Virus record (IMG/VR): IMGVR_UViG_3300024503_000015
Coordinates: 62,001 to 126,000 of that record
Length of the DNA: 64,000 nucleotides
Direction: 5' to 3' (one strand)
Shown here: positions 2,481 through 51,431 of the stretch, in pieces
How the letters are laid out: every line of letters begins with the position of its first letter
Numbering within the stretch: position 1 is the stretch's first letter
The notes under the pieces: model-generated
Told to the model about the DNA's origin: nothing
Databases searched by the model: none
The model's input: only the letters and a program-made list of their open reading frames with translations
Position numbers and translations under genes: made by a program

Positions 2481-2481
2481 A

Positions 2482-3963: not shown

Positions 3964-3969
3964 TCTATT

Positions 3970-4911
3970 TTACCTATATTCATATACTACACAAATTCCA
4001 TAGGTCCCGTCGTAGCCTGCTGACCACGTACCTTGACCGTAACTGTTATGTCCTGCGCCACCTGTTCCAGGTGCGCCAAGGTTTTGAGCCCATCTTTCGC
4101 TATAGTGATGTCCTGAATTAGCGCCACCAAAGAAACTTTGTCCACCGTGTCCTGGATTGTGATACGATGCGCTGTGACAATTTTTGTGTCCTGAGCCACC
4201 GCCACCGTGAATGTTCATGTTACCGCCAGAGCCAACACCGCCGTGGCCTCCACTGTGTTGATAGTTTTGATTAGCACCATAACCACCGGTAGCAGAACAA
4301 TATCCGCCAAAACTAGTTGTGCCACCCTGTCCACTAAAACCAAAATATTGGCCACCGCCTGATCCACCGCCTACTGTAACTGCTACAGTTGATATACCAG
4401 TAGCGTCTAAAATTAATTCAGACATGCCACCACTGCCGCCACTTTCACCGTAGCCACGTCCACCACCGCCTGCGCCAATACAAATTACACGAATTCTTTG
4501 TACATCTGATCCGCTTTTAGTATAAGTTCCATTAGATGTCCAGGTATAAATGTTCTTTAAAGAACCTTTTTTACTAGACACATAAGAAGTAACTGCGTTT
4601 TGTGTAGGAATTAACGAGTTACTAGTACCTAAACTAGTACTGGTACTAACTCCTGTAGCAGTTTGTCCGCCGTTAAGTTGTAAGTTTGATGTAGTCAGTG
4701 TACCACTAGACTGTGTAGTTCCTGTAATTGTTCCGCCAGTAATGCTTACGCTGTTAGATTCTTGATTACCAAACGAGCCAATAATTTTTCTAACACCAGC
4801 ATTACCGATATACATTTTAGCATCAGTAGTATTGACAGCAACTTCGCCATCGGCTAAGGAGCCTGGTACAGAACTTGCTGTGGTGCTAGATTTAAATTTT
4901 ATCTTTGGCAT
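3970..4911 (-). CDS. Glycine-rich tail fibre tip / adhesin-like protein, paralog 1
   Basis: Same architecture, ends GICVVYEYR. Confidence 0.65.
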   Translation of the reverse strand: MPKIKFKSSTTASSVPGSLADGEVAVNTTDAKMYIGNAGVRKIIGSFGNQESNSVSITGGTITGTTQSSGTLTTSNLQLNGGQTATGVSTSTSLGTSNSLIPTQNAVTSYVSSKKGSLKNIYTWTSNGTYTKSGSDVQRIRVICIGAGGGGRGYGESGGSGGMSELILDATGISTVAVTVGGGSGGGQYFGFSGQGGTTSFGGYCSATGGYGANQNYQHSGGHGGVGSGGNMNIHGGGGSGHKNCHSASYHNPGHGGQSFFGGANSGHHYSERWAQNLGAPGTGGAGHNSYGQGTWSAGYDGTYGICVVYEYR

Positions 4912-14900: not shown

Positions 14901-17413
14901 TTTGCAATAGCAGGCTTAGGACTGATAACAGTTGAACGTAGTTCATCACCAACAACTGCGGTATTCTTTGGAAGAACGATTGGCAACACTTCGTAGAATG
15001 TACCAGTCTTAACGCTGATTGTTGTGTTTGAAAATACTGCCGCTGGAATTGCTGTGGATGTTCCTGCTAGGATACCGTCAGTAACAATAGTCAATAATGA
15101 TTGTGCTGTAGTTACTGTGTCTGCTTCCGCAGTTAATGTACTGTCAATAATCTGAGCTACTGCTGTGTTTAAAGCAACACCGTTAGCCAATTGATAATTA
15201 ATTTCTGGTGGGTTGTTGTTTAAAACATCTTCCACTAAATCTTTCATGTAATTGTATGCGGCAACAGTTTGAGTAATCTGTTGTCCAAAGTTGCTGTTAA
15301 TATATGCACTACCAGCAGTGGTATAATAGGCCTTGGCTGCTTTAGTTGCTTCTTCATTACCACCGTGGCCGATATCATAAATTAGTGCGTCTACTAACAG
15401 GCCAACATCGCGTTGGCAGAAATCATAATCGTAGGATAATGATCCAGTCATTGATGCTGTTTGTGTTGTTAGTGTAGAAACTGTACCACCTTGTGTAGAA
15501 CTAATTGTAAAGTGTGAGCCGTCTACAACTGTTTTAACAAAATATTTTGTTCCAGCAGTTACACCGCCAACTGTTCCTGAGAACTCAATAGGCATATTTG
15601 CTGTTAAGTTTGTTGTGTCGTCTGCTGTAAATTCATTAGTTGCCGCAGAACTTGCTGTAATTGCTACAGAATATGTGTTAGTAACCCAGTTACTAACTTC
15701 TTTCATAATGAATTGTTTGTTCTTTGCCAACAATTCTGTTGCTTGTCTATTTCTGTAACCTTTTTCAATTTGTTCACAAGCATAACGCACAGTCTTCCAA
15801 GGCTTATCAATTGTAAGACCTTGGCCATCTTCAAGACTATCTGTTCCCAGTGGAGCAACATATACTAGGTTATTAATAACACCGTAGTACGCCCATGTAG
15901 GATAGCCACCGCTAACACGCAATATTTGACCTTCTGTGCCCACTGGCAGTCTTGTTGGTCCTGTTGTACCGTAGTAATATGTGTCGCCTGCTGTGGTTAG
16001 AACTGCTGATTCACTACCAGCAGCCAATAAATTCCAATATGTTGCGGTTGTGTCTGCATCTGGTCTGTTTAATAAACTTGCTGTATGCTCTAATACACAG
16101 ATATAACTGTTTGCACCAAAGAATACTGCATCGCCTTGTACATAATCATGATTCACTGTCCATGTTACAGAATAACCGCTTTCAATAATAATATTATCAA
16201 TTGCGCCAGCAGTTACTCCGTCTACTGTCAATGTTAAATCGTTGGCTGGGCTAATACCACCGACGCTTGTACCAGAGATAACAATTTGATCTCCGTCTGA
16301 ATAATTTGTTCCTGTGTTGTTTTTAACAACTGTATAAACAGTTCCTGTACGTGTAATATCGAAAGTTGCGGCCGAGCCAATGCTTGGGCTAACTGATGTT
16401 CCAGATACTCCAGTATATGTTGTTGACACATTGGTCCACTTAATACCTGTGTTTAATCTGTTCCAATAAGTTAAATTTGGTGGCTCTTGATTTGTGTTGT
16501 CTGCTATTGCCAGGTAAGTATAACTTCCTAATCTTACAACATCGCCTACTTTATAAGCAGTAGACGAAACCCAATCACCGTTAAAATTAAATCCAGTAGT
16601 ATAGACGTCCCAGTATGCTGTCGCTGTACTTGGATTTTGATTTGTATGATTTTGTGTGGCAATATATGAATAACCACCATATGTTACCACATCGCCTTCT
16701 TGGTAGACTGTAGAAGAACTCCAAGAATCTTCAAATTGAAGACCTTCAACAAATACTCCCCACTTAGTATCATCAAAAGTTGTGCTGGAAGTGTGTTGTG
16801 TTGTACAGATCCAAGTGTTGGCGCCGTACTTAACGATATCATTAATTTTGTAGCGTACAGAAGAATTCCATACACCTAGATATTCTAAGCCACTGTTGAA
16901 TACAGTCCACTTACTTTGGTCTGCTTCGAGACCTAATGATGCTGTGGCAGCAGATGTGTGTGCTGTATTACAAATATATGTAATACCGCCATACGAAACA
17001 AAGTCATATACGCGGTAACGAGTCGAGGTTGCCCACTCGCCTGTCCAGTAAAACGATTCTGCAAATGCTTCCCACTTGCTTTGATCTGCTTCTAAGCCCA
17101 GTGTTGTGGTTGCCGCAGATGTATGAGAAGTTAAACAAATATAAACTAAGCCGCCGTACTTAACTTGGTCGCCTTTATTATAATAAGTAGAAACGTCCCA
17201 GTCGCCCTGCCAACTAGTACCGTCACTGACTAGATTCCATTTTGGTGGATTTGCGTCACTATCAGTGACAAATAAACTTGCTGAAGTATGATTTATAACA
17301 CAAATATAACTCTTACCACCGATGTTGACTACGTCGTCAACTACGTAAGAAGTACTTGGTGTCCAATCACCTTTCCAAACAAATTTAATTCTACCTAATC
17401 TAAATTCTGCCAT
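5906..17413 (-). CDS. Giant (3835 aa) tail fibre / virion structural protein
   Basis: N-terminal W..T.Y..GD.V.YGG..Y.C...HTS repeats (CBM5/12-like), ten CxRD helical repeats, beta-helix-like segments, W..VAYG.G.FVA propeller repeats, C-terminus shared with 17462-25474; late promoter and GAGG RBS upstream. Confidence 0.75.
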   Translation of the reverse strand: MAEFRLGRIKFVWKGDWTPSTSYVVDDVVNIGGKSYICVINHTSASLFVTDSDANPPKWNLVSDGTSWQGDWDVSTYYNKGDQVKYGGLVYICLTSHTSAATTTLGLEADQSKWEAFAESFYWTGEWATSTRYRVYDFVSYGGITYICNTAHTSAATASLGLEADQSKWTVFNSGLEYLGVWNSSVRYKINDIVKYGANTWICTTQHTSSTTFDDTKWGVFVEGLQFEDSWSSSTVYQEGDVVTYGGYSYIATQNHTNQNPSTATAYWDVYTTGFNFNGDWVSSTAYKVGDVVRLGSYTYLAIADNTNQEPPNLTYWNRLNTGIKWTNVSTTYTGVSGTSVSPSIGSAATFDITRTGTVYTVVKNNTGTNYSDGDQIVISGTSVGGISPANDLTLTVDGVTAGAIDNIIIESGYSVTWTVNHDYVQGDAVFFGANSYICVLEHTASLLNRPDADTTATYWNLLAAGSESAVLTTAGDTYYYGTTGPTRLPVGTEGQILRVSGGYPTWAYYGVINNLVYVAPLGTDSLEDGQGLTIDKPWKTVRYACEQIEKGYRNRQATELLAKNKQFIMKEVSNWVTNTYSVAITASSAATNEFTADDTTNLTANMPIEFSGTVGGVTAGTKYFVKTVVDGSHFTISSTQGGTVSTLTTQTASMTGSLSYDYDFCQRDVGLLVDALIYDIGHGGNEEATKAAKAYYTTAGSAYINSNFGQQITQTVAAYNYMKDLVEDVLNNNPPEINYQLANGVALNTAVAQIIDSTLTAEADTVTTAQSLLTIVTDGILAGTSTAIPAAVFSNTTISVKTGTFYEVLPIVLPKNTAVVGDELRSTVISPKPAIANLVNDKPKTISALERIKAVAPNLVANNSIVPTEGNTATQEFMFNVTETIALDSVTTNIASIKAILENGLSSVPAFVYPTPTGGTGNAYDADYYNAARLILANKSFIQSEVSAWINAQISGNISPFVGFTYGGAGQTACERDVGYIVDALVYDLTYGGNLATQVAARSYYSKGIFVETGEKDQALAVQTRIKSFIDNIAVGNTAGWTKTTSSSQVTSGTPGGAAAGTFAQARIQEMYDTINTGTEPTTIAPSTSWVRPRLLTAFNAIVADKTNIQIGAIAWINANYPTLDYDQALCSRDVGYMVDALAYDVMFGSNFMSAKAGMAYQRGLASTGVVLADQLPQTLGTVDFVKNAVLKASAGTDTITSNIGVMTDILSTGLTAVPTFDLPTPTGGSSNAYTSGYFHAARLILANKAFLKAEVTAWINVQIAGSVSPFSGFIYDATTCERDVGYIVDALTFDLTYGGNLATQIAARSYYSNGVLVEVGEKSQALALWAYVKTIIDDIAKGLAITPSSGNVVSQVTSGTAGSAGAATDAQTRIQELYDTINTGTEPTTVAPDITWVASDLTTKNTNIQAAKTRIKSAAINWINATYPDLIYTASTCSRDVGYIIDALCYDLMFGSNFLSSWNAMSYYRGITSTQTVIAQQLLPTIGVIGFIGASVKEITTGVTGSVGNSVAIDRIELSANTAYDILNNGLDAVPAEVITDPTNLDVDFLNARTQIANNYAFIKADVSRYIQNNYAVVWTALGATGQAACQRDIGYILDAIRYDLTYGGNTQTLIAGSAYYSGLNLTISSSETAATVAAYTFLKSIIDDVAQRISVTPQSGNTTPQVTSGTGGDATAAAFAQARVQDIIDWINNGEAGTAIAPDTSWVDPALVAGFNILQDRKSEIQLDGTGYVQKFHHYLSYDETTCSRDIGYMVDGIGYDMMFGSNFAAITIGRSYHRAISSTAIVLANQLSASLGLIKFLKYKLKGYAVGGAVAQIGTIVDDIVGTIDGGAVPRFLWPDFTGVDAENYAAAKLIYDNKDFITAETLKYINTNYPAIVYSKSACARDTGYIIDALRYDLTYGGHFASKQAGIAYYSRLTSALQIDSGDKTATLAAYANMKSIVTDIANGGLSSYSALQTNVSYVTGTGGDATSSTRVGALMDVITNIIDTGLTTGVPRITITTIASGTTFTSTAHGLSVGDEVIAQTTANGLVAGTTYYVKTTPLTSTFTLAATYDGTELTSFTNGTGLSIAVEITNLPSTSWVDTNVATQAKVLSTDKASIQSAVTLYIDTNYPNLDYNSATCARDVGYILDALRYDILMGSNFRSIKAGMSYYQAQASLVIGDQKRATLNAYRYLRDAVNLKVESNATALASAKANMDTIIAILDKGVGETPDVVGTTTYHNDPGHIAAAEILRANKTFLENEATAWISYNFGGPTSGTSSSGNVITTTRAHNLSVGDPVKFLANQVSTVATDTTATGNIVTVLSTTGMTVGSKITFTGTGIGNIVSGVTYYILTVESDTEITISASYNGSVFSVGTGTGEMTVVAGAVIGGLAENTQYYVLTVPSTTTFTIGTTAGSITPTSVSTDTGTCTAVYSYDEASCKRDMGEYIDSIIYDINLPGNYKGTRSAVLYNNAVAGSELSDMFQVSNASGLRNCTLSGLNGDLTAENDYGTKRPTGGAYVALNPGFGPWDSKVWVTSRSHYSQNVTMFGVGCTGAKIDAALHARGNKSMVKNDFTTIMSDGIGVWCTGSDSLTELVSVFNYYGYAGYLAELGGRIRATNGNSSYGTYGVIAEGVDVSEVPLYGTVDNQAYQAQITNTVTDALSEVLRLEFGNAGTNYTNTTYTISGSGYNIDAIGDEFRDNTVFESRIIDLDDDNGVGGTSYVTASNAAQSGDKVSITIAATDTALSAAYTGMRIQLTAGTGVGQYANILTYQTGSKIAQVYKDSFTPLTATNTTVTTNLITVASTVTLYDNMPVYFSGTTFGGVSANTAYYVIGSTITSTQFKVAATSGSSTPITLSTASGSMTMYEAGWDHTVPGKTIENTLDLTTQYIIEPRISYTAPGYTATARTLSATATWKELTYGDSKYVAIASSGTTTSYSANGTTWATAGALSASASWVDVVYGGGEGARATAIIGGLGGQGAVFEAVLGVANTTGAATADQVASVNIISGGQGYTTPPVIVFTPVSGGTGAVATCAVLDGEIVSVTVTIPGTGYTVPPTVSAATDRLTQVTVNSWGRNYTGAPSVTVSDPFTGSAWSSGGTVTTGVYIYYVDSGDKNWYYVTSGGTFTTSGPIHTSGSAANGTVTLTYAGTTAVLTPTRTNEGVSGFTVTDTGKGYTTTPTISILDTGARYVAIATSTGDNCYTTSAGILAGSTWTAGTSTGKTDLAGLAYGGGVYVAVGGTASAVSSTSGSLWTSRTIPTLGSGTYSSVAYGAEMFVAISTGNLATAYSSNGTSWTAGGNLPASLSWTSVAYGNGRFVAIASGSKRVAYSIDRGTTWLESPAGLPASTTWSKISYGQGLFFAVATGGTTAATSPDGVTWTLRAMPSSSNWTAVQFGNISSNPLWVAASATSGTVAASIRTGAQATGRAKVASGVVTEIRMLEPGSGYPKGTVTATTVTTNLITVDNTTNLVDSQPIEFYGTSAGGLVEEQTYYVIGSTITSTQFKVSATQGSATPVTLSTATVSGMTYRAGPIYTLTDPNKVKVASLRIRMADGALGNPSFVNRGADNTTATSETQGDGYSDLYQPSNFINIAGLYDIPEAGANVEFDSLPGVYFKLVVVTNELGELGDKTAQFQINPALTVLQAPRHGDRVTTRIKYSQVRLTGHDFLYIGTGNKEQTNYPNVDISTANVANQAQFSAGGRVFFTSTDQDGNFNVGNLFGVQQATGTATLNASAFNLSGLNSLQLGSVELGIGSAIITQFSTDPFFTADSDSVVPTQRAIKAYITAQIGGGQSSLNVNTLTSGIVYIAGNSISTTTGEGIKVTSKMNFTGGIDGAPVALGFFMQR
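10070..15433 (-). repeat. Ten in-frame CxRDxGYxxDAxxYDxxxGxN helical repeats
   Basis: Counted in the translation; copies 2-9 alternate YGG(N/H) and (F/M)GSN endings; identical 29-nt DNA at 13664-13692 and 14594-14622 marks a ~930-nt internal duplication. Confidence 0.85.
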
Positions 17414-17461: not shown

Positions 17462-20400
17462 TTATATTGCTCCTGGGCGGTTCCATGTGTTAACAAAGTA
17501 AGAATACGCCATACCGTCACCGTCCCACCCGCCAAATTGTCCGTCAACTGTTACCTTTGTTGGCATATTAACCACTGCGCCTGTTAAGCCTTCCGGAATA
17601 GTGCTGGCAATTCTGTCTGCGCCACCTACTAAAACTGTACCAGCAATCAACTGTCCAGTAAATGTATTAGCACCACCTTGACTCAAACGTCCAGTTAAGT
17701 ATGCCTTAATTGCTCTCTGTGTTGGAATAATATTATTACTGTTAGCAATAAATGTTTCGTCTGTGCTAAACTGTCTAATAACCACACTTGATCCACCAAC
17801 TGCAATACCGCCCAGTGATAGTGTTTCTAGACCTGTTAGTCCGAATTGTGTAGCACTTAAAGTAACAATACCAGTTGCTTGTTCAACACCAAACAAATCA
17901 CCAACTTTAAAGTTACCGTCTTGGTCAGTACTAGTATAGAACACACGACCAAAGTTAACTTCAACTGCCTGATCCTGTGGAGCAAGAACTGTATCTTCTG
18001 GTAGGTTAGGATAGTTACTTTGAATAGCGTTTCCGTAGCCCACATTTAAGAAATCGTGTCCTGTTAATCTTGCCTGGCTGTATTTTGTTCTAATAATAAT
18101 ATTTGCTTCGTGTGCTGGACTTAATTCCACGGTCATATCTGGAGAAATTTCAATATTTGCTTCAATATTTGGTGCTGTTGTTCCATACACAGGGGTAGCA
18201 TTTGTTACTTTATAAATTTTACTGTTTCCTGAAATAACCAAGTTATCACCAGGAGCAGGTAGTTTAGATAAATTCTTAACTATTAATGTTAATCCGGTTT
18301 GGAATGTATCAGCATAGCCACTGCCATTAATTGTAATAATTGTAGAGTTAGTATTATAATCTTGTCCTCTGTTTACAAAAGTTGGATTTCCTAGTGTACC
18401 GTTGCTAATTCTTAATGAAGTAGTTGCAGACACAGTAACGTTTGGATCTCTAAAAGTTAATAATGGAGTACTGGTATAACCTGACCCTGGCTCCCATAAA
18501 CTAATAGATGTAATAGTTCCTGAAGTAATAACTGCACGACCTTTAGTTCTGCAACCTGTTTCAATAATACTACCAACAGTTTGAGCCGCCACTGTAACAA
18601 ATTTTCCTTGGTCGTTGTTTGTGCCTACAAACGCAAATTTAATAGCACCATATCCGTCATCCGATACTGTGCGTTCTGTCCATGCGTAGCCGTCTTCTGA
18701 TGTATATGCAACTCCAGCAGTGCTAGATAGAGCTAAAAATACACCCTGACCATATTCAATTTTGTTTACACCTGAGATAGTATATGGAGATTGTGTCCAT
18801 GTTATACCATCTCTACTGTAAGCAGGTTTAGCACTACTGCTAGAAACTGCAACAAACAAGCCATTACCATAAGCAACGTCGCTCCATGTTGTAGAGCTAG
18901 GTAATGTTGCTGATGACCAACTTGTTCCGTTTGAACTGTAAGATGCAGTAGTACTTACTGTTGAACTAGCAGTTCCTGAAACAGTAAATGATGTAATAGC
19001 GCCGCCAATAGCCGCTACGCCTGTTACAGTAATTGTAATATCGTTTGCTGTGGTTGCTCCGCCAACTGCTGTACCTAAAACACTAACTATACTAGATGTT
19101 GTATAACTAGAACCACCACTATTAACTGTTACTGTATAGCCACTGCTTCTAGCGGTTACATTAAATGTTGCCCCAGATCCACCGCCTGAAGTAGTAGACG
19201 ATGTAACACCTGTATAGGTAGTTCCATCGGATACTGCAACAAATTTTCCGTTACCAAACGTTAGTCCAGTCCAACTTCTTGCAACTAGTCCTGTACCGCT
19301 AGACCATGTACCGCCATAGTTTGAACTGTATGCAGAGCTAGTAGTTTCAGCGGCTATAGCGACAAATTTTCCGTTGCCGTACGCAACTTTACTCCAAGTA
19401 GTCAACGAAGGCAATGTAGTTGTTCTCCAACCTTCTCCGTTGTTAATAGAATATAGTGCAACTGAACCTGGATCTCCAAGGGCGCCACCGCTGGAAATTA
19501 CAACCCAGCGATTGTTACCGTAGGCAATATCTGTCCAAGTTTTTGGACTTGGCAAAGGTATTGCGTCCCAGGTTGCGCCACCGTCTGTCGATTTTCCAGC
19601 AATAGCATTACCACTTGGTAGAGCAATAAATGTGCCATCGCCATAGGCTAATCCTATCCAACTAGTGCCCGGAGCCAATGTATTAGTTGTCGATGCTGTT
19701 TGTGTCAAACTAGGAGCAGATATTGTAACTCTTGGTTCAACATAGTAAACGGTTGAATTATCTAATAACGCTTCTATAGTAGTTCCTGGATTCATATGAT
19801 CCCAACCTACTGCCGCAATGTTCATAGATCCGGTATCTGTTTTTAATGTACTTGCAGTGCCGCCAGGTGTACCGCTGACTGTAAATGTTGAAGTACTATC
19901 GATCGTCTTGACATAATATGTTGTTCCAGCAGATACATCTCCAAACAAATTAGTCGAATATGTACCGTTCATCGAACCGTAACCAATGGTTAGTGTCGAT
20001 TTTGCATTTGTAGTTGTTCCTGTCATCGATCCTGATGCTGTAGACAATGTAAATGCTGCCGCTGTTGTTTTACCCAATACTTCTCCGGTAGCAGTTGAAA
20101 GGTTTAGCGCACTACCTCCAGGAGAAGAACTAATTGTAAATGTTGTTGCATCATTAACGGCTAGAATATAATATGTTGTTTCGTTGACAATACCGCCAAA
20201 TGTATTTCCTGTAAACTTAATTGGATTGTTTGCAACAAATCCTGCTGTTGAGTCAACAGTAATTAAGTTTGTTAAAGTTTCTGTTTCTGTTACAGTTACA
20301 GAAATAACTGTATCTGTAACTGTAAATGTTGAAGAGTTAACAATCTTATTAACATAATACTTTGTTCCAGCAACAATTCCTCCAAACACAACGCCTGTAA

Positions 20401-23400
20401 ATTCTATTGGATTTAATGGCACTAGCGATGCTGTTGAAGATGTTGTAATGTAATTTGTAGCCGCAGTAGTTGCTGTGGCAGTTATACTTACTAATGTTGT
20501 CGATATTGTAAATTTGGATGCTGAAATAACATCATTAACATAATATGTTGTACCTACTGCAATGTCTCCTATTGAGGTTCCAGTAAACTGAACAGGCATG
20601 TTAATTTTCATATCATTAGTTTGACCTAATACATAACTGTTATAACCTGGGAACGACATAGTCATTGCACCTGTGTCAGAATTTAACAGCCATGCTGTTC
20701 CAAAAGGTTCAGTACTGATAGTTATTGTCGTACCATCGATAATTTCTTTAATGTAATAAGTGTAAGAGTCGGTAACGCCGCCAAAAACTGCGCCGCCAAA
20801 CTTAACTTGCATATTAACACTTAATTTTGCAGTACTAGCCAACGTTAACGTATTAGTTGATCCGCCAATTGTTTCAACAACGTTGACGAAATCAACAGAA
20901 GTATTAGTTACAGTGGTACTGTAATATGTAGGAATAAATTGTACTGGTTGATTCAAATACAATGTATCTGTGGTATAGTCTCCGTCTAAAGTAAGTATTC
21001 CTGTACTGTTATTTGTAGAAATAATGTTCAACGGTTCAAAAGATTCTTTAAGAATCTGTGCTACTTTAGTGCCCTCGTCATATGACGAAATATATCCGTA
21101 TTGTCCTGCTCCTGTTCCGCTGTTAAGGAACACTCTCATACCAATGTAGTTACTTGCAGTTTTTGTATCTGATCCTGCTAAAGTAATAGTTTCTTCGTCT
21201 CCTGCTTGAGCATTATTAGATGACACTAAGTAATTTCTTCCGCCAACTGCACTACCTGTATCTGTAATACGTGCCTGGAATACTGCGTTGGATCTAATTT
21301 CGTCTCCAATTAAGCGAGCATTAGTACCTGCACCTACTATAGAATAATTTGCATAGGCAGTATATTGATCATTCTCTGTCTCAAGGTAGAACGTAGGATC
21401 AGAATTAATCTGAACTTGTGCTCCGTAGAAGCGTGTATTTCCGCTTAGACCTGCTCGACCTCTTGGATAAATTCTAAATTGAAGATTATTATTCAATCCA
21501 ACATTGTCGTACACAGTCATCCATATTCTATACCAACCTTCAGTTAACTCTAGTTTACCGTATGAAACTGGAACTGCGCCGCCAGATGCTGTAGATACTG
21601 CAAGACCTTTAGTGCTAAATGTAAATTCTAAATAAGAATATACTGTTGATGAACCACTGTATATTGCGGCGATGTCAAATGTTGCAGATGATCCTTGTTT
21701 TGCGTAGATGCTAAATGTGTAATTTAAATCGCTGTTTGTTGGAACAACTCCTGAAACAGTGGCGGATAAAATAGAACTTCCCGATAGAGTTGCTACAGTT
21801 AAGAAGCAATCATTTGTTCCGTCTTCGCCGCCCAACGAGCTACCTGGAATTCTTAATTCGTTACCAGTAACGTAGCCGCTACCTCCAGCATTGACTACTG
21901 CTGAGTAACCTGTAGCACCCACAGTAATATCGAATGTAGCACTATTACCTGAACCAGTCACATTAACTGTTTCTACTGCTGTGTAAACTTTACCAGGAGG
22001 TAATACAGAAATATTTTGATAGATATAACTTGAATCGCTACCAGATGTTGCACCTGTCAGTGTCCATGCATCTGATTGTCCAAATGGAGATGTTGTATTC
22101 TTCTGAATAGTAACATTACCGTCTGTAGTCCATGGACTAGTTGAAAATTTATTACTGTATTGTAATAAGTTTGTTGTGTCTGCAACGTAGTTAGAGCCAG
22201 CATTACTAAATTGTATTGCTAATAATTCAGCATTAGTACCAAATGCACTTTGTACACTGGCCTGTACTTGGCTAGATCTGTTGTCAATTTTTCCTGAGAT
22301 AGGAACTTCTGTATTATCGTAACCTTCAGCAATAACACCATATGTACCATATGAGCTGTTACCGTTGGTAGCACGGATTCTACCGCCGTCTTCGGCAAAA
22401 TATCCAGCATAATTGTAGTAACCGAATACTGACACGCACTCAGTTAATGAATTAGAACCAGTACACCATACACCAATACCATCACTGATGATTTGTGTAA
22501 AGTCATTACAAGTTATTGAACGATTGCCGCCGTTGTGTAGTGTTCCATCGATTTTTAATCCGGTGCAACCGACACCAAAGTTGGTAACGTTTTGAATGTA
22601 AGGGCTTCGACGAATAATCCAAGTTCTAGTATCGTCAGGACCATTACCTGGATCTAGACTTACATAGGCACCACCCGTTGGTCTGCGTGTGCCAAAGCCG
22701 TTTGGACTTGTTAAAGATCCTGCTAGACCTGTTAATGTCATGTTACGAATGCCTGTAGCATTACGTACATAGAACATATCTTTCAAACAGTCTCCAGCAT
22801 ACACTGTCATAAATCCTGTGCCAGTTGTTAGTGCAACTACTGAACCTCCTACTGTTTCTGAAATAGTAATTTGACTGCCTACTATTTCTTTAACATAATA
22901 TGTTTGTCCTAGAGTAACTCCACCAAAATCATCATTTGTTGTTGCCGCAGAAAATTGAATAGGCATATTAACTGTGACATTTTTAATAGATCTCAGTGTA
23001 AATCTATTAGTTGAGCTACTTGAGCTAGAAGTTGATGTATAAACAGTTACTTTAGGTTGTACCACAGTTCCACGAAGTTCGTCACCGATTAGAGCAGTAT
23101 TATCTGCAACTATGATCGGTAGTTCTTCAGAATATGTTCCTGTTTTAATCATGATAGAAGTTGTCTGACCTTGATTAATTAAAGGAACATTTTCTGTGCT
23201 GGCATTTTGTATTGCATCGATTACAATGTTCATCAGGCTGGTAATTTCAAGATACGCACCAGACTCTAAAGTTAATCCATTGTTGATATACTGTTGTACT
23301 GTCGGGTCTGCTATTACTTCCCAATTTTGATTTCCAACGGTTTCTGGATTGTTATCGATATTGCCATCAATTAAACTCTTATAAAATATTTCGTTCCAAT

Positions 23401-25474
23401 AGACAATGTCGTTAGTGACATAAGTTTCTGTAGCGTCCCAAACAATATTTTCAACTTGATAGTTAACATCTGGGTTAGAGTTTTGATAGACATAACCAAT
23501 CAAAACTAATAGTCGTTCAAGTGCGGCAACAATATATGGCTGTGCCGCATCTGTTTCTGTGTTAAAGAAAGTAGTAGTGCTACCTTCAGCAAAGAATGCC
23601 TTAGTAGCAATTACTGTTCTACTATTACTAGCTCTAGTAATGTCATAAGAAAGTGCGTCAATAATTAATTCTGCATCTCGTCTAGTCGAGTATTCTTGGA
23701 ATTCCGATGTTGGGCTAAATGGAGAATTACTATTTGCTTTTTGATATAGCATCCACTGATACATTTCTTCAACTAAGAAATCTTTGTTCTCAGTTAATAA
23801 TGTATTGGCATTCTGGAAATAAAATCCGTTCTCAACTTGTTGACAAGCATACGCAATAGTTTTCCAAGGTTTATCCCATGTCTGACCGTGATCTGCATCG
23901 TCTACACCGTCGTTAGATACGTAGTACAGATCTGGAATAACAAACATTTTTTTCCAGTTTGGTTGTCCGTTAGAAATGTGGAAGTGATAATCTTCTGTAT
24001 CTCCGGCAGCACCGCCTTGTGGAATAATTGGAACAGCAACAGTTGATGTTCCGTCAAATGTAACAATGTCGCCTTGAGTATTACCTGCGTTTTCTTTTGC
24101 ATGAACTACATATACTACCCAGAATGCGTTAGCAACATCTAGGTCAGGTCTAAAGAACGAACTAGATGTATGATTTCTAATACAACGATATGTGCAGTTT
24201 TCCCAGATTACTAAGTCGCCGATAATATAATTTGTGGTGTTAGTCCAGAAATTAGTCCATCTAACTGATGGAACAACCAACTTCCATTTAAGATAATTGA
24301 CACCTACAAAGTCAATATTGTCCCCATTGGTCAATGAACCGTTAGGAACTTCGCTGATAATCAATGTTGTACTGTCATTTACAGATACCACAGTCTGGCC
24401 TTGCGTAAATGATGGGTTAACTAAAACCATGCCCTTTGTAATGCCAGCCGTTGAAACTACTTTTAAAGTTGTTCCAGAACTTCCTGTGTCCACATAAGAA
24501 CCAGTTACTGCATAACTTGTTGGATCTTGGCCTGCGCTATCTATCACGGCTGTGAATAATTGTCCGCCTCTGCGTACAACATCACCGACTCTATATTGAG
24601 CACCCGAACTCCACTCGTTCATCATTCTATAACCTTGGGTTATTAGTTCCCAAGCAGATGACGAGTCTTCAGCATTAACTGAAGGAATGATATTTAAGTT
24701 ATTGTTGATTAAACTTACGTAAGTGTAACCGCCATAGATAACAATGTCGCCTTTTTGATACAATGCTGAACTGGTCCAGCCATTTTCAAATTGTGTACCT
24801 GGTAGCCAAACATTAAATGTAGTTGTATCAAATGTAGTAGTAGAAGTATGTCCTTCTGTACAAATATAAACATCTGCTCCTAGTTTAACAAGGTCGTTTA
24901 ATTTATATCTTGTCGATGCAGTCCAAGCACCTTTGTATTCGATACCATTGTTTACTACTTCCCATTTGTAGTTGTCTGCTTCGCGGCCGTCTGTAATATT
25001 GTCAGCAGATGTATGATCTTCAACGCAACGATAAACTATACCGCCATATTTTACAATATCTCCAAAACCATAGACAGTAGAAATAGCCCAAGCAGTATTC
25101 CAGTTATCGAACTGTGCGTATGTGTCCCATTTGGTTAGGTCAATGGTTGTTAATCCACTGGTATGTGCCTCGGTACAAATATAAACAACACCACCAAATC
25201 TAATGATATTGCCGATTGAATAAAATGTGCTCGGTGTCCATTCTTCTCTCCATGCTCGACCATCAATCATTAGTTCCCAGCGAGGAGTGCTTGCGCCACC
25301 GCCTGTTACATAATATAAGTCGTCGTAGAAATTACTAGAGGATGTGTGCGGCTCTTTACATACGTAAGTTTTACCTTCGTATTGAGATACAGCGTCTCTG
25401 TTGTAGAACACGCCATCGTTCCATTGTCCTTTCCAGGTATATCTTAATCTACCAATTTTAAATTCTGCCGCCAT
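17462..25474 (-). CDS. Giant (2670 aa) tail fibre / virion structural protein, paralog of 5906-17413
   Basis: Same N-terminus (EFKIGRLRYTWKG), same C-terminus (RLTGHDFL, TSTDQDGNF, PTQRAIKAY) and several PIxFxG.xFGG.....YYV domains. Confidence 0.75.
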   Translation of the reverse strand: MAAEFKIGRLRYTWKGQWNDGVFYNRDAVSQYEGKTYVCKEPHTSSSNFYDDLYYVTGGGASTPRWELMIDGRAWREEWTPSTFYSIGNIIRFGGVVYICTEAHTSGLTTIDLTKWDTYAQFDNWNTAWAISTVYGFGDIVKYGGIVYRCVEDHTSADNITDGREADNYKWEVVNNGIEYKGAWTASTRYKLNDLVKLGADVYICTEGHTSTTTFDTTTFNVWLPGTQFENGWTSSALYQKGDIVIYGGYTYVSLINNNLNIIPSVNAEDSSSAWELITQGYRMMNEWSSGAQYRVGDVVRRGGQLFTAVIDSAGQDPTSYAVTGSYVDTGSSGTTLKVVSTAGITKGMVLVNPSFTQGQTVVSVNDSTTLIISEVPNGSLTNGDNIDFVGVNYLKWKLVVPSVRWTNFWTNTTNYIIGDLVIWENCTYRCIRNHTSSSFFRPDLDVANAFWVVYVVHAKENAGNTQGDIVTFDGTSTVAVPIIPQGGAAGDTEDYHFHISNGQPNWKKMFVIPDLYYVSNDGVDDADHGQTWDKPWKTIAYACQQVENGFYFQNANTLLTENKDFLVEEMYQWMLYQKANSNSPFSPTSEFQEYSTRRDAELIIDALSYDITRASNSRTVIATKAFFAEGSTTTFFNTETDAAQPYIVAALERLLVLIGYVYQNSNPDVNYQVENIVWDATETYVTNDIVYWNEIFYKSLIDGNIDNNPETVGNQNWEVIADPTVQQYINNGLTLESGAYLEITSLMNIVIDAIQNASTENVPLINQGQTTSIMIKTGTYSEELPIIVADNTALIGDELRGTVVQPKVTVYTSTSSSSSSTNRFTLRSIKNVTVNMPIQFSAATTNDDFGGVTLGQTYYVKEIVGSQITISETVGGSVVALTTGTGFMTVYAGDCLKDMFYVRNATGIRNMTLTGLAGSLTSPNGFGTRRPTGGAYVSLDPGNGPDDTRTWIIRRSPYIQNVTNFGVGCTGLKIDGTLHNGGNRSITCNDFTQIISDGIGVWCTGSNSLTECVSVFGYYNYAGYFAEDGGRIRATNGNSSYGTYGVIAEGYDNTEVPISGKIDNRSSQVQASVQSAFGTNAELLAIQFSNAGSNYVADTTNLLQYSNKFSTSPWTTDGNVTIQKNTTSPFGQSDAWTLTGATSGSDSSYIYQNISVLPPGKVYTAVETVNVTGSGNSATFDITVGATGYSAVVNAGGSGYVTGNELRIPGSSLGGEDGTNDCFLTVATLSGSSILSATVSGVVPTNSDLNYTFSIYAKQGSSATFDIAAIYSGSSTVYSYLEFTFSTKGLAVSTASGGAVPVSYGKLELTEGWYRIWMTVYDNVGLNNNLQFRIYPRGRAGLSGNTRFYGAQVQINSDPTFYLETENDQYTAYANYSIVGAGTNARLIGDEIRSNAVFQARITDTGSAVGGRNYLVSSNNAQAGDEETITLAGSDTKTASNYIGMRVFLNSGTGAGQYGYISSYDEGTKVAQILKESFEPLNIISTNNSTGILTLDGDYTTDTLYLNQPVQFIPTYYSTTVTNTSVDFVNVVETIGGSTNTLTLASTAKLSVNMQVKFGGAVFGGVTDSYTYYIKEIIDGTTITISTEPFGTAWLLNSDTGAMTMSFPGYNSYVLGQTNDMKINMPVQFTGTSIGDIAVGTTYYVNDVISASKFTISTTLVSITATATTAATNYITTSSTASLVPLNPIEFTGVVFGGIVAGTKYYVNKIVNSSTFTVTDTVISVTVTETETLTNLITVDSTAGFVANNPIKFTGNTFGGIVNETTYYILAVNDATTFTISSSPGGSALNLSTATGEVLGKTTAAAFTLSTASGSMTGTTTNAKSTLTIGYGSMNGTYSTNLFGDVSAGTTYYVKTIDSTSTFTVSGTPGGTASTLKTDTGSMNIAAVGWDHMNPGTTIEALLDNSTVYYVEPRVTISAPSLTQTASTTNTLAPGTSWIGLAYGDGTFIALPSGNAIAGKSTDGGATWDAIPLPSPKTWTDIAYGNNRWVVISSGGALGDPGSVALYSINNGEGWRTTTLPSLTTWSKVAYGNGKFVAIAAETTSSAYSSNYGGTWSSGTGLVARSWTGLTFGNGKFVAVSDGTTYTGVTSSTTSGGGSGATFNVTARSSGYTVTVNSGGSSYTTSSIVSVLGTAVGGATTANDITITVTGVAAIGGAITSFTVSGTASSTVSTTASYSSNGTSWSSATLPSSTTWSDVAYGNGLFVAVSSSSAKPAYSRDGITWTQSPYTISGVNKIEYGQGVFLALSSTAGVAYTSEDGYAWTERTVSDDGYGAIKFAFVGTNNDQGKFVTVAAQTVGSIIETGCRTKGRAVITSGTITSISLWEPGSGYTSTPLLTFRDPNVTVSATTSLRISNGTLGNPTFVNRGQDYNTNSTIITINGSGYADTFQTGLTLIVKNLSKLPAPGDNLVISGNSKIYKVTNATPVYGTTAPNIEANIEISPDMTVELSPAHEANIIIRTKYSQARLTGHDFLNVGYGNAIQSNYPNLPEDTVLAPQDQAVEVNFGRVFYTSTDQDGNFKVGDLFGVEQATGIVTLSATQFGLTGLETLSLGGIAVGGSSVVIRQFSTDETFIANSNNIIPTQRAIKAYLTGRLSQGGANTFTGQLIAGTVLVGGADRIASTIPEGLTGAVVNMPTKVTVDGQFGGWDGDGMAYSYFVNTWNRPGAI

Positions 25475-43118: not shown

Positions 43119-45488
43119 TTATGCACTATTATTTGAAGTTTGTCTAGTGTATTTGGCTGTCTTGCTCAAATAATCCACAGCGTCTGATTGATGTGAGACT
43201 AATTGACTCATATTCATATTTAACTGATTTAACAGGTCTACCATCTCTTTGCTGGACGCATCGGATACTTTTACGTTTCCAGGTGCTCCTTCTTTTTGCT
43301 CAGACTTCATAGAGCTCTTGATGGTTTCGCTTAATTTATTAATGTTATTATTCAGTTGATCTAAATTAGTGTTATTCAAATCTTTAAATGCACTAGTTGT
43401 TGTAGTAATTTCTTCTCTAAGATTTTTTAATTTAATAACACCTGCATCGATACTTGAACCCACTGCCTCTGGGAACATTAATTTTGAATAATCTACATCC
43501 TTTAATGCCGTTTTAAGTGCATTAACTTCTTGATTTAACTTTGCTACAGGTTCGGCAGCATTTGTCTCTGGAGGTTTTGGTGCATTTGCTTTTGGTATTT
43601 CTGCACCAGGTACTGTATTTTTAGTATTTTCCGTTTGTGCATTAGCGGCCGCATTTGTTTTTGTCTTTAAAAAGTCTGGAGTTAGAAAATCAACAACTTC
43701 ATCTTTATAAATGATTAATCCTGCTGTTGTTGCTATTGCCCAGGCCCATGGATTCTTTATAGTGGAAACAATTTTTTCTAGTTTTCCGGCTTTTGCAACA
43801 TCTTCTGCGGCTTCTGCGGCTGCTCCTGGCTTAACTGGTTCTCCTTTAGGAGTTTTAGGTTCACCACCTTTAGGTTCACCGCCACCTTTTTTCATTTCTT
43901 CATATTTTTTATAATCCATGCCAGCGGCTTTTGCACCAGCATAACCTATTGCAGTACCTACACCAGCCTTAATAAGAGCATCTGCAATCTCTTTACCTAG
44001 TGCGGCTCCAAACAATACTGGAATTCTTGCGGCTGGATCTAACTTAGCAAATTTTTCAGCGGCTGCTTCTGCACCACTTGCCGCCGATTTTAATCCAGTT
44101 GCGGTTAAATCTAGTACGCCACTTTCAATAAATGACTTCTTAAATGAATTTTGTACATTAGTTAATGTCTGATCTAAACCTGCTACTGCTCTTGTTGGGT
44201 CTGTCTTAGATGCAGCCAGACGTTTTTCTTGTTCTTCCTTGGCCATTGCGGCTGCTTTTTGCGAGTCGCCCATGCCTTGTAATACTGCTTTACCTAACAT
44301 TGGAGTCATTTGACCCATAGTTGCCATTGCGGCGGCTGTTCTTCTTTCGCCTTCGCTGATATTTTCGCTGGCTTTGGCGGCTTTACTAAATCCAGCGTTC
44401 ATATCGTCGACAGCAGACTTAGATCCGTTAAAAATTTCTCGGCCCATTTTACTAGCATCAACGCCTGCACTTTGCATTGTCAATGCAAATTGTCTTGCTT
44501 CAGCAGTTACAGCAACACCACCGCCAGCAATAATATCTTTAAAGCCTGCGGCCATTTTACCAGTTGGATCTAGTTGTTCTAACTGTTTAATTTTAGCATT
44601 AACTGCCGCCTGTTGGTCTGCATCTAATTTGCCTAATGCTAATTTCATTCTAGCATCACGTTGAGATGATTTATTGGCTTCATCTATCTGTTGTCTAGAT
44701 AATCCTGTTGCCTTTGATAGTCTGTCTAGTTCTTCGTTATATTTTTCTTGACCTGCAACAATTTCATCAGTGCTCATCTTTGACAAGCGACCGTTGCGTT
44801 GTTGTTGTTCCATGTAACTAGCATTATATGTTGCTAGTTCATCCATACTAAATCCAAGCGCGGCAAATTTTTGACCGCTCTGTGCCATAAACTTGCCTTG
44901 TGTTTCAGCAAACTTAGTAGCACCAGCAGTGGCAGATCCAAACGCCATAGCCAGCGATTGGCTGTTTTCTTTTACAGTTTTTCCAAAAATTTCTAAAGGA
45001 AGTCTTGCTTCACCTGCTGATAGTTGTGCTTGTAACAATGAATCACCTAAGTCAATACCAGATCCACTTAGTGTTCTAAAAATTTGTATTTGATCTTCTA
45101 ATGTTCCGCCAAATTGCTGAACTACATCGCTAACGCCCTTGATGTTTGCGCCGGGCATTTGTGCCAGTACACCAGAAAAATCTTTAATTGTAGGAGTAGT
45201 ATTTGAAAATGTTTTAGCAAATGAGTCTGCACCAAGAGATACAGCATCTCCTGCTAGTTTCATTCGTGCCTTATATTCTTTTTCAGTTTCAGCACCTTTT
45301 CGCATTTGCTCAGCCCGAGCATCATTGTCTCCTGCGCCACCGCCACCGCCGGGCGTGGCACCAGGTTTTCCGCCTGCAGGTATTCCGCTTTTATTAATTG
45401 CCGCAAGTATCTGTCTAAGAGTCGAGTCTTCGGCAGCGTTTTCTACAATAACTGTTCCTACTCCAGGAACTATGGCTTTTACTGACAT
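43119..45488 (-). CDS. Tape measure protein (putative)
   Basis: 789-aa Ala/Gln/Met-rich helical protein, Y..ELD.LSK.TG.SR motif, adjacent to a frameshifted chaperone gene. Confidence 0.7.
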   Translation of the reverse strand: MSVKAIVPGVGTVIVENAAEDSTLRQILAAINKSGIPAGGKPGATPGGGGGAGDNDARAEQMRKGAETEKEYKARMKLAGDAVSLGADSFAKTFSNTTPTIKDFSGVLAQMPGANIKGVSDVVQQFGGTLEDQIQIFRTLSGSGIDLGDSLLQAQLSAGEARLPLEIFGKTVKENSQSLAMAFGSATAGATKFAETQGKFMAQSGQKFAALGFSMDELATYNASYMEQQQRNGRLSKMSTDEIVAGQEKYNEELDRLSKATGLSRQQIDEANKSSQRDARMKLALGKLDADQQAAVNAKIKQLEQLDPTGKMAAGFKDIIAGGGVAVTAEARQFALTMQSAGVDASKMGREIFNGSKSAVDDMNAGFSKAAKASENISEGERRTAAAMATMGQMTPMLGKAVLQGMGDSQKAAAMAKEEQEKRLAASKTDPTRAVAGLDQTLTNVQNSFKKSFIESGVLDLTATGLKSAASGAEAAAEKFAKLDPAARIPVLFGAALGKEIADALIKAGVGTAIGYAGAKAAGMDYKKYEEMKKGGGEPKGGEPKTPKGEPVKPGAAAEAAEDVAKAGKLEKIVSTIKNPWAWAIATTAGLIIYKDEVVDFLTPDFLKTKTNAAANAQTENTKNTVPGAEIPKANAPKPPETNAAEPVAKLNQEVNALKTALKDVDYSKLMFPEAVGSSIDAGVIKLKNLREEITTTTSAFKDLNNTNLDQLNNNINKLSETIKSSMKSEQKEGAPGNVKVSDASSKEMVDLLNQLNMNMSQLVSHQSDAVDYLSKTAKYTRQTSNNSA

Positions 45489-45512: not shown

Positions 45513-45520
45513 TATAAATA
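45513..45520 (+). promoter_or_regulatory. Late promoter (TATAAATA) for the gp26-like gene
   Basis: Exact T4 late consensus; GGAG RBS downstream. Confidence 0.75.
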
Positions 45521-45546: not shown

Positions 45547-45561
45547 TTGGAGTAAAAACAC

Positions 45562-46428
45562 ATGGAAAATCAAGTAGCAGTACCGCAAAACCCGTTGAAG
45601 AAGTACTTTAGACAACCGAAGCTCTATGTTCGTTTGCCTAGTTCTGGTAATTTTTATCCACCAGGCACGTTAGAACCTACACAAAATATGGAGTTTCCAG
45701 TTTATGCTATGACTGCTAGAGATGAAATTTCTATTAAAACACCAGACGCATTGTTAAATGGTCAAAGTACTGTTGATGTTATTCAAAGTTGTATGCCTAA
45801 TATTAAAAATGCCTGGGCAATTCCTAGTATTGATATTGATGCTATATTAATTGCTATTCGTATTGCAACATATGGCGAACAAATTGATGTAGATATTGCT
45901 ATTCCAAACATATCAGAAACAAAAACGTATACTACTGACCTACGATTAGCGTTAGATAAACTGTTAGATGCTACATTTGATCCAGAAGTTCGAATTAATG
46001 ATGAATTAACTGCATTTTTACGTCCATTATCCTATGAAGAATTTACTAAAAGTTCTTTAAAAAGTTTAGAAGAACAACGAATTTTTACTATTGTTAACAG
46101 TCAAGAACTAACAGAAGAACAAAAGATTGCTCAATTTAATAAGAGTTTTAAAGCATTAACTGAAATTACCATGAGATCAGTGGCCAATGGATTAGTCAAA
46201 GTTGTTACGCCTGAAGGCGAAGTAAGTGATCCAGCATTTATTAAAGAGTTTATCGATAATGCTGACAAAGAATTTTATACTAAAATCATCGATCACTTGG
46301 AAAAACAACGCATTAAGTTTCAAATGCCGTCGTTTAAAATTCAAACTACAGCAGAAGAGCAAGCTCAAGGTGCTCCTGCTGAATTTGAAACTCCTATAGG
46401 ACTAGACGCTTCAAATTTTTTCGCGTAA
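45562..46428 (+). CDS. gp26: Baseplate hub assembly chaperone (T4 gp26-like)
   Basis: NPL..YFRQP...LPS.G.FY, V..MTA.DE, D.DAILIAIR.ATYGE motifs. Confidence 0.75.
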   Translation: MENQVAVPQNPLKKYFRQPKLYVRLPSSGNFYPPGTLEPTQNMEFPVYAMTARDEISIKTPDALLNGQSTVDVIQSCMPNIKNAWAIPSIDIDAILIAIRIATYGEQIDVDIAIPNISETKTYTTDLRLALDKLLDATFDPEVRINDELTAFLRPLSYEEFTKSSLKSLEEQRIFTIVNSQELTEEQKIAQFNKSFKALTEITMRSVANGLVKVVTPEGEVSDPAFIKEFIDNADKEFYTKIIDHLEKQRIKFQMPSFKIQTTAEEQAQGAPAEFETPIGLDASNFFA

Positions 46429-46652
46429 AGCTCTTCAGCCTAACACTCGAAGACGCACTAAGAGTAGTTGAGGGGCTAGATAAAGAAGCAAAGTCCATAA
46501 GAACCGAATTGTTTAAATTGTGCTGGTATATGAGAGGTAGCATCACCATAGATGACGCATTTGCATTATCCTATGAAGATCGTGAAATCATATCGAATAT
46601 TATCAAAGAGAATTTAGAAACTACTAAGAAATCAGGATTACCCTTTTTCTAA
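46419..46652 (+). CDS. -1 frameshift extension of the gp26-like chaperone (gp51-like segment, 77 codons)
   Basis: Slippery heptamer T TTT TTC at 46416-46422 just before the 0-frame stop; -1 frame open to TAA 46650-46652 (FRVKLF...LCWYMRG...KENLETTKKSGLPFF) with no RBS-linked start at its 5' end. Confidence 0.7.
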   Translation, partial: FRVKLFSLTLEDALRVVEGLDKEAKSIRTELFKLCWYMRGSITIDDAFALSYEDREIISNIIKENLETTKKSGLPFF

Positions 46653-46659
46653 TACTTCA

Positions 46660-46745
46660 AGATTCACTGCGTTCATCTGTTCATCGCTTCGCTCGAACTA
46701 TTTGTTTTATTTTAATTATAGAGCATTATTAAGTGCGAAGCACTT
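46660..46745. other. Cluster of ssDNA-type mini-hairpins flanking an AT-rich tract (possible origin/priming site)
   Basis: Minus strand GTTC-GA-GC-GAA-GC-GA-T-GAAC and AGAT-GA-AC-GCA-GT-GA-ATCT; plus strand AAGTGC-GAA-GCACTT; 46699-46720 has one G in 22 nt. Confidence 0.5.
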
Positions 46746-47095
46746 TAGCATTATCCAGATTGTTCAGTCACACTTCGCCCGCACAGGGCAAAGTTAAAAA
46801 CATTATCCGAGTTGCACAATGTCACACAGCGTTAGAGCATTACAGTGGCGGTTGTCCGGTACCACGAGCTCCGTCTTATCACAACGGCGGTAAACAAATA
46901 TACGCTATCATACTTGCTTACGTGAGGTTTTTCTCCTCTCCTTGAGCCTTTTCTTCTTAAAACAGCAAAACCGCGGCAATTTGCGATCCTCGTCCTGTTA
47001 AGGATAGTTGCTGAGTACTCTTAACGGCAAGAGAATTCCGTCCCTGCGACCCGAGGTCCAGGTATAGAGCGCACGAATTTAGCCTGCGCTAGCCA
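46746..47095 (-). ncRNA. Candidate large structured non-coding RNA downstream of GIY-YIG nuclease
   Basis: At least nine hairpins; about 47% GC by hand count over 46741-47100, clearly above the flanking genes; several stems need G-U pairs that work only on the minus strand. Confidence 0.6.
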
Positions 47096-47539
47096 TTAAC
47101 CGTTTGATTTTGCCTGTGCTTGTTCTAATAAACGCTGTCTTAGTATATTTGATCCGCCTACTCTAACATTAATAATACCGTTATAGTAGTCGTCAGTTTC
47201 TAAAACCCTACGTTCGAACTGCTCTCTTGCCTCTAGATAAGACATTTCTGCCTTGGATTTGCAAAAATAAAGTATTTCTCTTGTGAATTTTTCTGGACCT
47301 AGTGCGTGGACGTCTGCTTGTAATCTCTCAGATGAGCCCCAATATTCGCGCCAATCGCTTTCTACTGTGCTACGTCTTTTGAGTTTTTTGCCTTTGAGTG
47401 GTGGTTTTGTACGCTTAAACTGTGCTAGTTTTTTGCCTATATATTTCTGTCCAGATTGGTTGTTAGTGATGAGATAAACAAAGCCTATAACGCCTTCGGG
47501 TATTTCTTCAACTAATACATTTTGATAGTGCCACGACAT
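47096..47539 (-). CDS. GIY-YIG family endonuclease (standalone, short)
   Basis: GFVYLITN...KYIGKK, Y.GSS, F.REIL..C, E...Q and YYN motifs; likely start ATG 47539 (MSWHY). Confidence 0.8.
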   Translation of the reverse strand: MSWHYQNVLVEEIPEGVIGFVYLITNNQSGQKYIGKKLAQFKRTKPPLKGKKLKRRSTVESDWREYWGSSERLQADVHALGPEKFTREILYFCKSKAEMSYLEAREQFERRVLETDDYYNGIINVRVGGSNILRQRLLEQAQAKSNG

Positions 47540-47554
47540 GCACATATATACCAG

Positions 47555-50574: not shown

Positions 50575-50604
50575 ATTATAGCAAAAATACAACAGCCGTG
50601 TCAA
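50575..50604 (-). promoter_or_regulatory. sigma70-type promoter for gp47-gp46
   Basis: TTGACA-N18-TATAAT with extended -10 TG. Confidence 0.8.
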
Positions 50605-51431
50605 TCTTCTGCGGCCGGTGTATTCTCTCGTTTCATTGCGTTATCGTATTCTTGATTAATCATACGGGTGTAACTTGGGTTCATACCATTTTCTTGCAAG
50701 ATATCGTCTCGGATGTTTTGCATTTTCTTTTCGATATTAATGACACGGACAAACGAATTCGTGACTGCCGCGGTAAAATATGCGAAAGGGTTATCACTTT
50801 TGCTTTCATCAAATTGTAATCCTATTTGTGTAAGTTGAAGGATTGCTTGACCCTTCATTTCGTCATTGTAAGTATAACCTCTAACGTTACCTCTGGTAGC
50901 ATATCGTTCGCAGAGTTTGATATACATACGGGCTAGTGTGTCTGTAATTTGACCATGATCTTTACTGAACTTGCCCTTAATCATTCCGCCCTTCCAGTGG
51001 CTTTTACCTACACATATTAGTTCGTCATTGTCGTCAAATTTCCAGTGCTGGAACGCTGGAAAATTTACTTTCTCTCTATGATCCGCCTGACTTTTTGGTG
51101 TACGTTTACGCCCAGGTTCTAGCGGAATGTGATCGTAAGTCATAATTCTAAAAACTAAATCAGTTTTTTCAATTTTCTTATAATCTACTTCAAACTCGGC
51201 TACTTTAACTTTGGGGTTTACGGCTTTAGCCGCTTCAAATGCTTGTTGTTGCTGTCGTTTAGCCTTAACTCTTTTGGCTTCTGCGATGGTTCTAATGTTA
51301 ATTTTTTCTAAACTTGGTAGTATTAAGTCGTATTGATGGTACTCTGGCTTAACAAAACTACAGTAAGAGTTCTTACTTTTGTGTATCTCGGATAACAAAT
51401 CTTTGTTATTCAGGTAGTTAACTTTTTTCAT
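50601..51431 (-). CDS. gp55: Late transcription sigma factor (T4 gp55 family)
   Basis: NYLNNKDLL, RGYTYNDEM and FDESKSDNPFAYFT....NSF motifs. Confidence 0.88.
   Translation of the reverse strand: MKKVNYLNNKDLLSEIHKSKNSYCSFVKPEYHQYDLILPSLEKINIRTIAEAKRVKAKRQQQQAFEAAKAVNPKVKVAEFEVDYKKIEKTDLVFRIMTYDHIPLEPGRKRTPKSQADHREKVNFPAFQHWKFDDNDELICVGKSHWKGGMIKGKFSKDHGQITDTLARMYIKLCERYATRGNVRGYTYNDEMKGQAILQLTQIGLQFDESKSDNPFAYFTAAVTNSFVRVINIEKKMQNIRDDILQENGMNPSYTRMINQEYDNAMKRENTPAAED

Follow-up and report, generated by a model that had tools for sequence, protein, structure and literature searches.

We identify a conserved site at the 3' end of the single gp26/gp51-family (PF12322) gene of a jumbo phage which is best explained as a programmed -1 ribosomal frameshift that gives a 288-aa and a 363-aa form of a predicted baseplate-hub assembly chaperone, probably the equivalents of T4 gp26 and gp51, respectively. 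We consider this reading very likely from the comparative evidence, although it is inferred from sequence and no trans-frame protein has been observed. The stretch analysed here (the window) is 64,000 nucleotides of IMG/VR record IMGVR_UViG_3300024503_000015 (positions 62,001 to 126,000 of that record). The record is 270 kb long with an estimated completeness of 71%, and the window sequence occurs in many riverine metagenome runs. The surrounding genes are those of a jumbo phage with T4-like core genes (portal gp20, protease gp21, major capsid protein gp23, gp46/47, late sigma gp55, gp5-like and gp25-like proteins, and large baseplate-wedge and fibre proteins), rather than those of a T4-sized phage.

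The gp26-like gene (45562..46428, + strand) encodes 288 aa, is preceded by GGAG at 45549-45552 (9 nt before the ATG), and ends AAT TTT TTC GCG TAA. Its product was assigned to PF12322 (T4_baseplate; 33.5 bits against a cut-off of 24.5, residues 59-255) and to phrog_150 ('baseplate hub'; 3.5e-11) by profile search, and a six-frame search of the window's own record recovered it at 6e-9. The slippery heptamer T TTT TTC (46416..46422, + strand) lies in X XXY YYZ register and encodes the C-terminal Phe-Phe. The -1 frame read from 46422 (46422..46652, + strand) gives 76 sense codons (RVKLFSLTLEDALRVV...KKSGLPFF) and a TAA at 46650-46652. This frame is closed by a stop 12 codons upstream of the zero-frame stop, and its first ATG, GTG or TTG is the TTG at 46509, which lies 29 codons into the conserved domain. 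A -1 slip would therefore give a protein of 287 + 76 = 363 aa with junction ...LDASNFF|RVKLF, as originally predicted. On this reading, most ribosomes read AAT TTT TTC GCG and stop, whereas a fraction, held up by a downstream stem-loop, slip back one base while tRNA-Phe occupies both the P and A sites on U UUU UUC, and continue with CGC GUA AAG to add a 76-residue helical domain.

To assess conservation of the site, we collected homologues by tblastn, which found the gene only in jumbo phages (Phosso, Atu_ph07, PA5oct, Asteriusvirus, RaK2, XacN1, Vibrio phage 2.275.O and others; 92-94 records in all), and by a scan of IMG/VR, which gave 80 loci at 42-100% identity. In 64 non-redundant sequences, down to about 26% protein identity, the gene ends with TTTTTTC (63 sequences) or TTTTTTT (XacN1). 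The codon before the heptamer always ends in T although it encodes eight different amino acids (AAT 24, ACT 18, GAT 12, CAT 4, AGT 3, and CGT, GCT and TAT once each), and the second Phe codon is TTC in 63 of 64, whereas TTC makes up only 149 of 737 Phe codons (20%) elsewhere in the same genes. The zero-frame stop moves while the heptamer stays, lying 1 codon after the heptamer in 50 sequences, 4 codons in 10, and 3, 6, 10 or 11 codons in single cases. The -1 frame is open for 71-79 codons in every complete locus and its peptide is conserved (W35, M37, R38, G39, N64 and P74 nearly invariant). Only 11 of 64 loci have an ATG near the junction, 31 have only a GTG or TTG (mostly the Leu codon of the conserved R-x-R-L-L), and 22 have no start codon at all. 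None of the deposited records of these relatives annotates a frameshift, and the piece is either a 'hypothetical protein' or unannotated.

To search for a stimulatory RNA structure, we first applied RNAalifold to a codon-based alignment of 59 downstream regions, which found no common structure because the 3' arm sits at different distances in different clades. A register-free search for the longest stem whose 5' arm begins 3-10 nt after the heptamer then found perfect stems of 10-18 bp, starting 3-6 nt downstream, in nearly all loci (for example GGCTTTTGTATCT/AGATACAAAAGCC, GGCTTTTGAATC/GATTCAAAAGCC, AGGATCTTAAC/GTTAAGGTCCT and, in XacN1, CCATCAAGTCC/GGACTTGATGG). The mean stem score was 11.3 against 5.7 +/- 1.3 at 992 control positions inside the same genes, 89% of loci reached the 95th percentile of the controls, and the arms differ between clades by paired changes. 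In the window (46429..46477, + strand), an 11-bp stem is formed by AGCTCTTCAGC (46429-46439) and GTTGAGGGGCT (46467-46477), beginning 6 nt after the heptamer, although the window's own fold is not more stable than shuffles overall (z = -0.17). A heptamer, a spacer of about 6 nt and a covarying stem together make the classical -1 ribosomal frameshift cassette.

To assess whether the extension is a real domain, we computed AlphaFold2 models, in which the 76 residues fold at pLDDT 91 (57-row alignment) with helices 9-37, 43-48 and 51-71, and the 288-aa part folds at pLDDT 84 and pTM 0.78. The 288-aa model matches BFVD models named 'baseplate hub (assembly) protein' (E down to 4e-21, TM up to 0.84). 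A profile of the extension was searched against 1.84 billion representative proteins and found 481 proteins at E <= 1e-3, most of them short ORFs. About 20 of the best 150 are proteins of 319-351 aa in which the domain occupies the last 75 residues of a PF12322-type protein, with a junction (...LDLDFSxxFRx(K/R)(L/I)...) that mirrors the predicted trans-frame junction. One such fused gene (labelled P0124, 351 aa) lies directly after a 294-aa PF12322 paralogue, so some lineages encode the short and long forms as two genes.

T4 gp26 (208 aa) and gp51 (249 aa) both match the whole PF12322 profile (8.8e-64 and 3.9e-52), and gp51 has an extra tail of about 47 residues (precomputed tag PF28602) covered by phrog_150 positions 236-282 and by phrog_634. 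T4 gp26 ends ...KEFFELL, with the non-slippery codons TTC TTT and a TGA in the -1 frame. Six-frame searches showed two PF12322 genes in T4 but only one in the window's record, Atu_ph07, PA5oct, RaK2, A4, S-PM2, KVP40, HTVC008M, phiM12, RM378 and Aeh1. In S-PM2, KVP40, phiM12, HTVC008M and Aeh1 this gene again ends in T TTT TTC or T TTT TTT followed by an open -1 frame of about 60 codons, whereas RM378 does not fit the pattern. An HMM of the T4-type gp51 tail matches the -1 peptides of S-PM2 (1.2e-10), phiM12 (1.4e-9), HTVC008M (7.5e-8) and KVP40 (2.3e-4). In 57 of 57 non-redundant cyanophage-type loci the heptamer is TTTTTTC, the stop is one codon later, and the -1 frame runs 57-64 codons; an ATG near the junction is present in only about half of them, and a hairpin at or above the control 95th percentile in 52%. 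These short ORFs are called 'gp51' in S-PM2 (S-PM2p208) and 'similar to a 40 amino acid stretch at the C-terminus of T4 gp51' in KVP40 (KVP40.0327), are described as truncated and 'missing the first ~200 aa' (Sullivan 2010, PMC3037559), and are counted as missing in Aeh1. On the frameshift reading, the missing 200 residues are supplied by gp26, and the extension of Aeh1 simply has no start codon.

For the window's extension, homology to the gp51 tail rests mainly on position and architecture. PHROG and Pfam scans of the window's extension were empty, one of 64 members hits phrog_634 at 0.0055, and direct hhalign or HMM comparisons with T4 gp51 were weak or inconsistent. The jumbo-type extension aligns colinearly with the T4-like extension family (extension residues 41-72 against small-gp51 residues 25-56, sharing the ...(E/D)R(E)... 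helix), but similarity is marginal (hhalign P = 0.011 for this alignment, and 0.011 to 0.07 across comparisons). The window's extension is also longer (76 aa), and the window protein lacks the Cys motifs of T4 gp26 and gp51, although the C-terminal FF is conserved.

The function of the two forms is inferred from T4 genetics and synteny. gp26 and gp51 are listed as hub assembly chaperones, and gp51 is absent from the virion (reviewed in PMC3004832); the hub contains the tape measure gp29. We infer that the two predicted products are likewise non-virion chaperones needed to build the central baseplate hub around the tape measure protein, and that they are made in a set ratio. In S-PM2, the gene order is a tail-tube-family gene (phrog_45), gp26, the -1 'gp51', and a 1167-aa ORF with tape-measure (phrog_9570, 5e-21) and peptidase hits, while in KVP40 it is tail tube, gene 26, small 51 and a 656-aa ORF of unknown function. 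This is the canonical tube-G-T-tape measure order of lambda-like phages (in KVP40, in position only). In the window, the gene is instead divergent from a 789-aa ORF (43119..45488, - strand), and no tube gene is nearby (a PF06841 search of the window's own record gave only a sub-threshold hit). The original prediction took this ORF to be the tape measure gene, which is probable but not proven: it has no Pfam or PHROG hit, but it is syntenic with RaK2 ORF088 (noted as similar to a tape measure protein) and with PA5oct gp335 (a virion protein by mass spectrometry, to which there is a weak BLAST match), ESM Atlas features point to tape-measure families PF10145, PF20155 and PF06791, the protein is fast-evolving, and its length varies from 679 to 923 aa among relatives. 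T4 also has gene 26 divergent from the 51-27-28-29 cluster.

The logic resembles that of lambda gpG/gpGT (Levin 1993 and Xu 2004, as summarised in PMC5009743), in which two non-virion assembly proteins share an N-terminus through a -1 frameshift, and we think that the pair works like G/GT, with a shared domain plus a minority form carrying an extra adaptor domain. The original prediction that gp26/gp51 correspond to G/T is supported with one refinement, as gp26 corresponds to G and gp51 to the whole GT fusion rather than to T alone. The heptamer is U UUU UUC rather than G GGA AAG, and the protein is not a member of the known tail-assembly-chaperone families. PDB searches of the 288-aa model (predicted alpha/beta) by Foldseek and VIA-align returned only generic helical-hairpin matches, so no structural link to known tail assembly chaperones could be made, and the extension gave only weak hits to 'tape measure chaperone' models (E about 2).

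Among alternatives, it is unlikely that the downstream piece is a separate small gene translated by coupling or re-initiation at the gp26 stop, with the heptamer merely encoding a conserved Phe-Phe. This is how the piece is annotated in KVP40, S-PM2, A4, XacN1 and others; ATGA or TAATG overlaps, or an ATG 2 nt after the stop, occur in Atu_ph07, Phosso, KVP40 and S-PM2, where an independent small protein could also be made; and T4 gp26 also ends in FF. However, the window has no start codon before codon 30 of the domain, most jumbo-type loci lack an ATG, about half of the cyanophage-type loci and Aeh1 lack a nearby ATG, synonymous positions of the heptamer are invariant whereas T4, which needs no slip, uses TTC TTT, and the natural in-frame fusions and T4 gp51 show that the domain works attached to a PF12322 domain. 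Transcriptional slippage, in which RNA polymerase adds one U in the T6-T7 run, is similarly unlikely but cannot be excluded without deep RNA reads. A homopolymeric T run is the conserved core, and slippage on A or T runs is a known route to the same outcome (PMC5009743), but the run is only 6 T (7 in a few), shorter than the runs usually needed, the X XXY YYZ register and the following C are conserved, the covarying stem is the hallmark of ribosomal frameshifting, and contigs from RNA libraries bridge the site with the genomic run length (although contigs hide rare variants). A chance open frame or a homopolymer assembly error, to which some sequencing chemistries are prone, is excluded by the identical tail sequence in 9 independent metagenome contigs and at least 18 runs, by conservation across families of phages, and by the confident predicted fold.

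Frameshifted tail chaperones are well known from lambda G/GT, but we found no mention of such a frameshift for gp26/gp51 or for T4-like phages in the open literature (subscription journals were not covered), in the 2016 recoding review, or in any of the annotated records examined. It is somewhat more likely than not that the tail-chaperone frameshift conserved in long-tailed phages, and thought absent from T4, is present in the gp26 gene across the T4-like superfamily (cyanophages, pelagiphage, KVP40, Aeh1, phiM12, and the RaK2, PA5oct and Atu_ph07 jumbo phages), that T4-type phages split the G and GT equivalents into two genes, and that the 'truncated' or 'missing' gp51 of marine T4-like phages is the frameshift extension. 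This would correct the annotation of at least about a hundred deposited genomes (the 92-94 jumbo-phage records plus T4-like phages such as S-PM2, KVP40 and Aeh1), would extend the rule of a frameshifted chaperone pair beside the tape measure to the largest group of contractile-tailed phages, and offers a natural comparison of two ways to set a protein ratio, by frameshift or by gene duplication.

Finally, a T4-late-promoter-like octamer (TATAAATA; 45513..45520, + strand) lies 42 nt before the gp26-like start, possibly by chance; the octamer has only 2 matches in the window, fewer than the shuffles give. A gp55-like late sigma factor is encoded at 50601-51431.

In Aeromonas phage Aeh1 (record positions 117507-121223), which was reported to lack gp51, the single gp26 gene ends GAT TTT TTC GAC TGA and is followed by an open -1 frame that carries the gp51-tail motif (PFERAIY) and has no start codon. 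A metagenomic contig (L109, positions 411-2389) carries tandem PF12322 genes, of which the first is a 294-aa short form that keeps AAT TTT TTC but has a closed -1 frame, and the second is a 351-aa form with the extension fused in frame. This is a two-gene solution like T4 genes 26 and 51. T4 also makes an internal product, 26' (95 aa; positions 3803-4090 on the minus strand of the T4 record segment L088), sharing the C-terminus of gp26, and therefore produces nested forms of this chaperone by a different route. Rhodothermus phage RM378 does not fit the pattern: its PF12322 gene has C TTT TTT near the end, but the -1 frame is closed and the +1 frame is open for about 70 codons instead.

The T4 late-promoter consensus, TATAAATA, lies at window positions 45513-45520 on the plus strand, 42 nt before the gp26-like start. 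Only 2 copies are present in the 64 kb window, fewer than chance gives, so this phage may use another late-promoter motif. At position 46648, one RNA-library contig (run X19) reads C instead of T, which changes the last Phe codon of the extension to Ser and is probably a strain variant.

The 443-nt stretch after the extension (46653-47095) contains no ORF longer than the 70-aa GTG ORF at 46733-46945. A strong, full-length match to Rfam RF01718, Polynucleobacter-1 RNA (119 bits; E-value 1e-26), was found at 46960-47094 on the minus strand, directly 3' of the SegE-like GIY-YIG endonuclease ORF at 47096-47545 on the minus strand. In a DNA run, contig depth rises at 46803-46863 and 46986-47046, and other contigs break off at 46985/46986. 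The stretch at 46960-47094 therefore seems to be repeated elsewhere in the sample and may be part of a mobile unit.

Two giant ORFs of 3835 and 2670 aa (5906-17413 and 17462-25474, both on the minus strand) lie beside the baseplate-wedge-like genes. At 1524-4911 on the minus strand, three consecutive ORFs (318, 493 and 313 aa) share the same C-terminal tail-fibre-type region (phrog_863 and phrog_21412) and look like a paralogous fibre or chaperone cassette.
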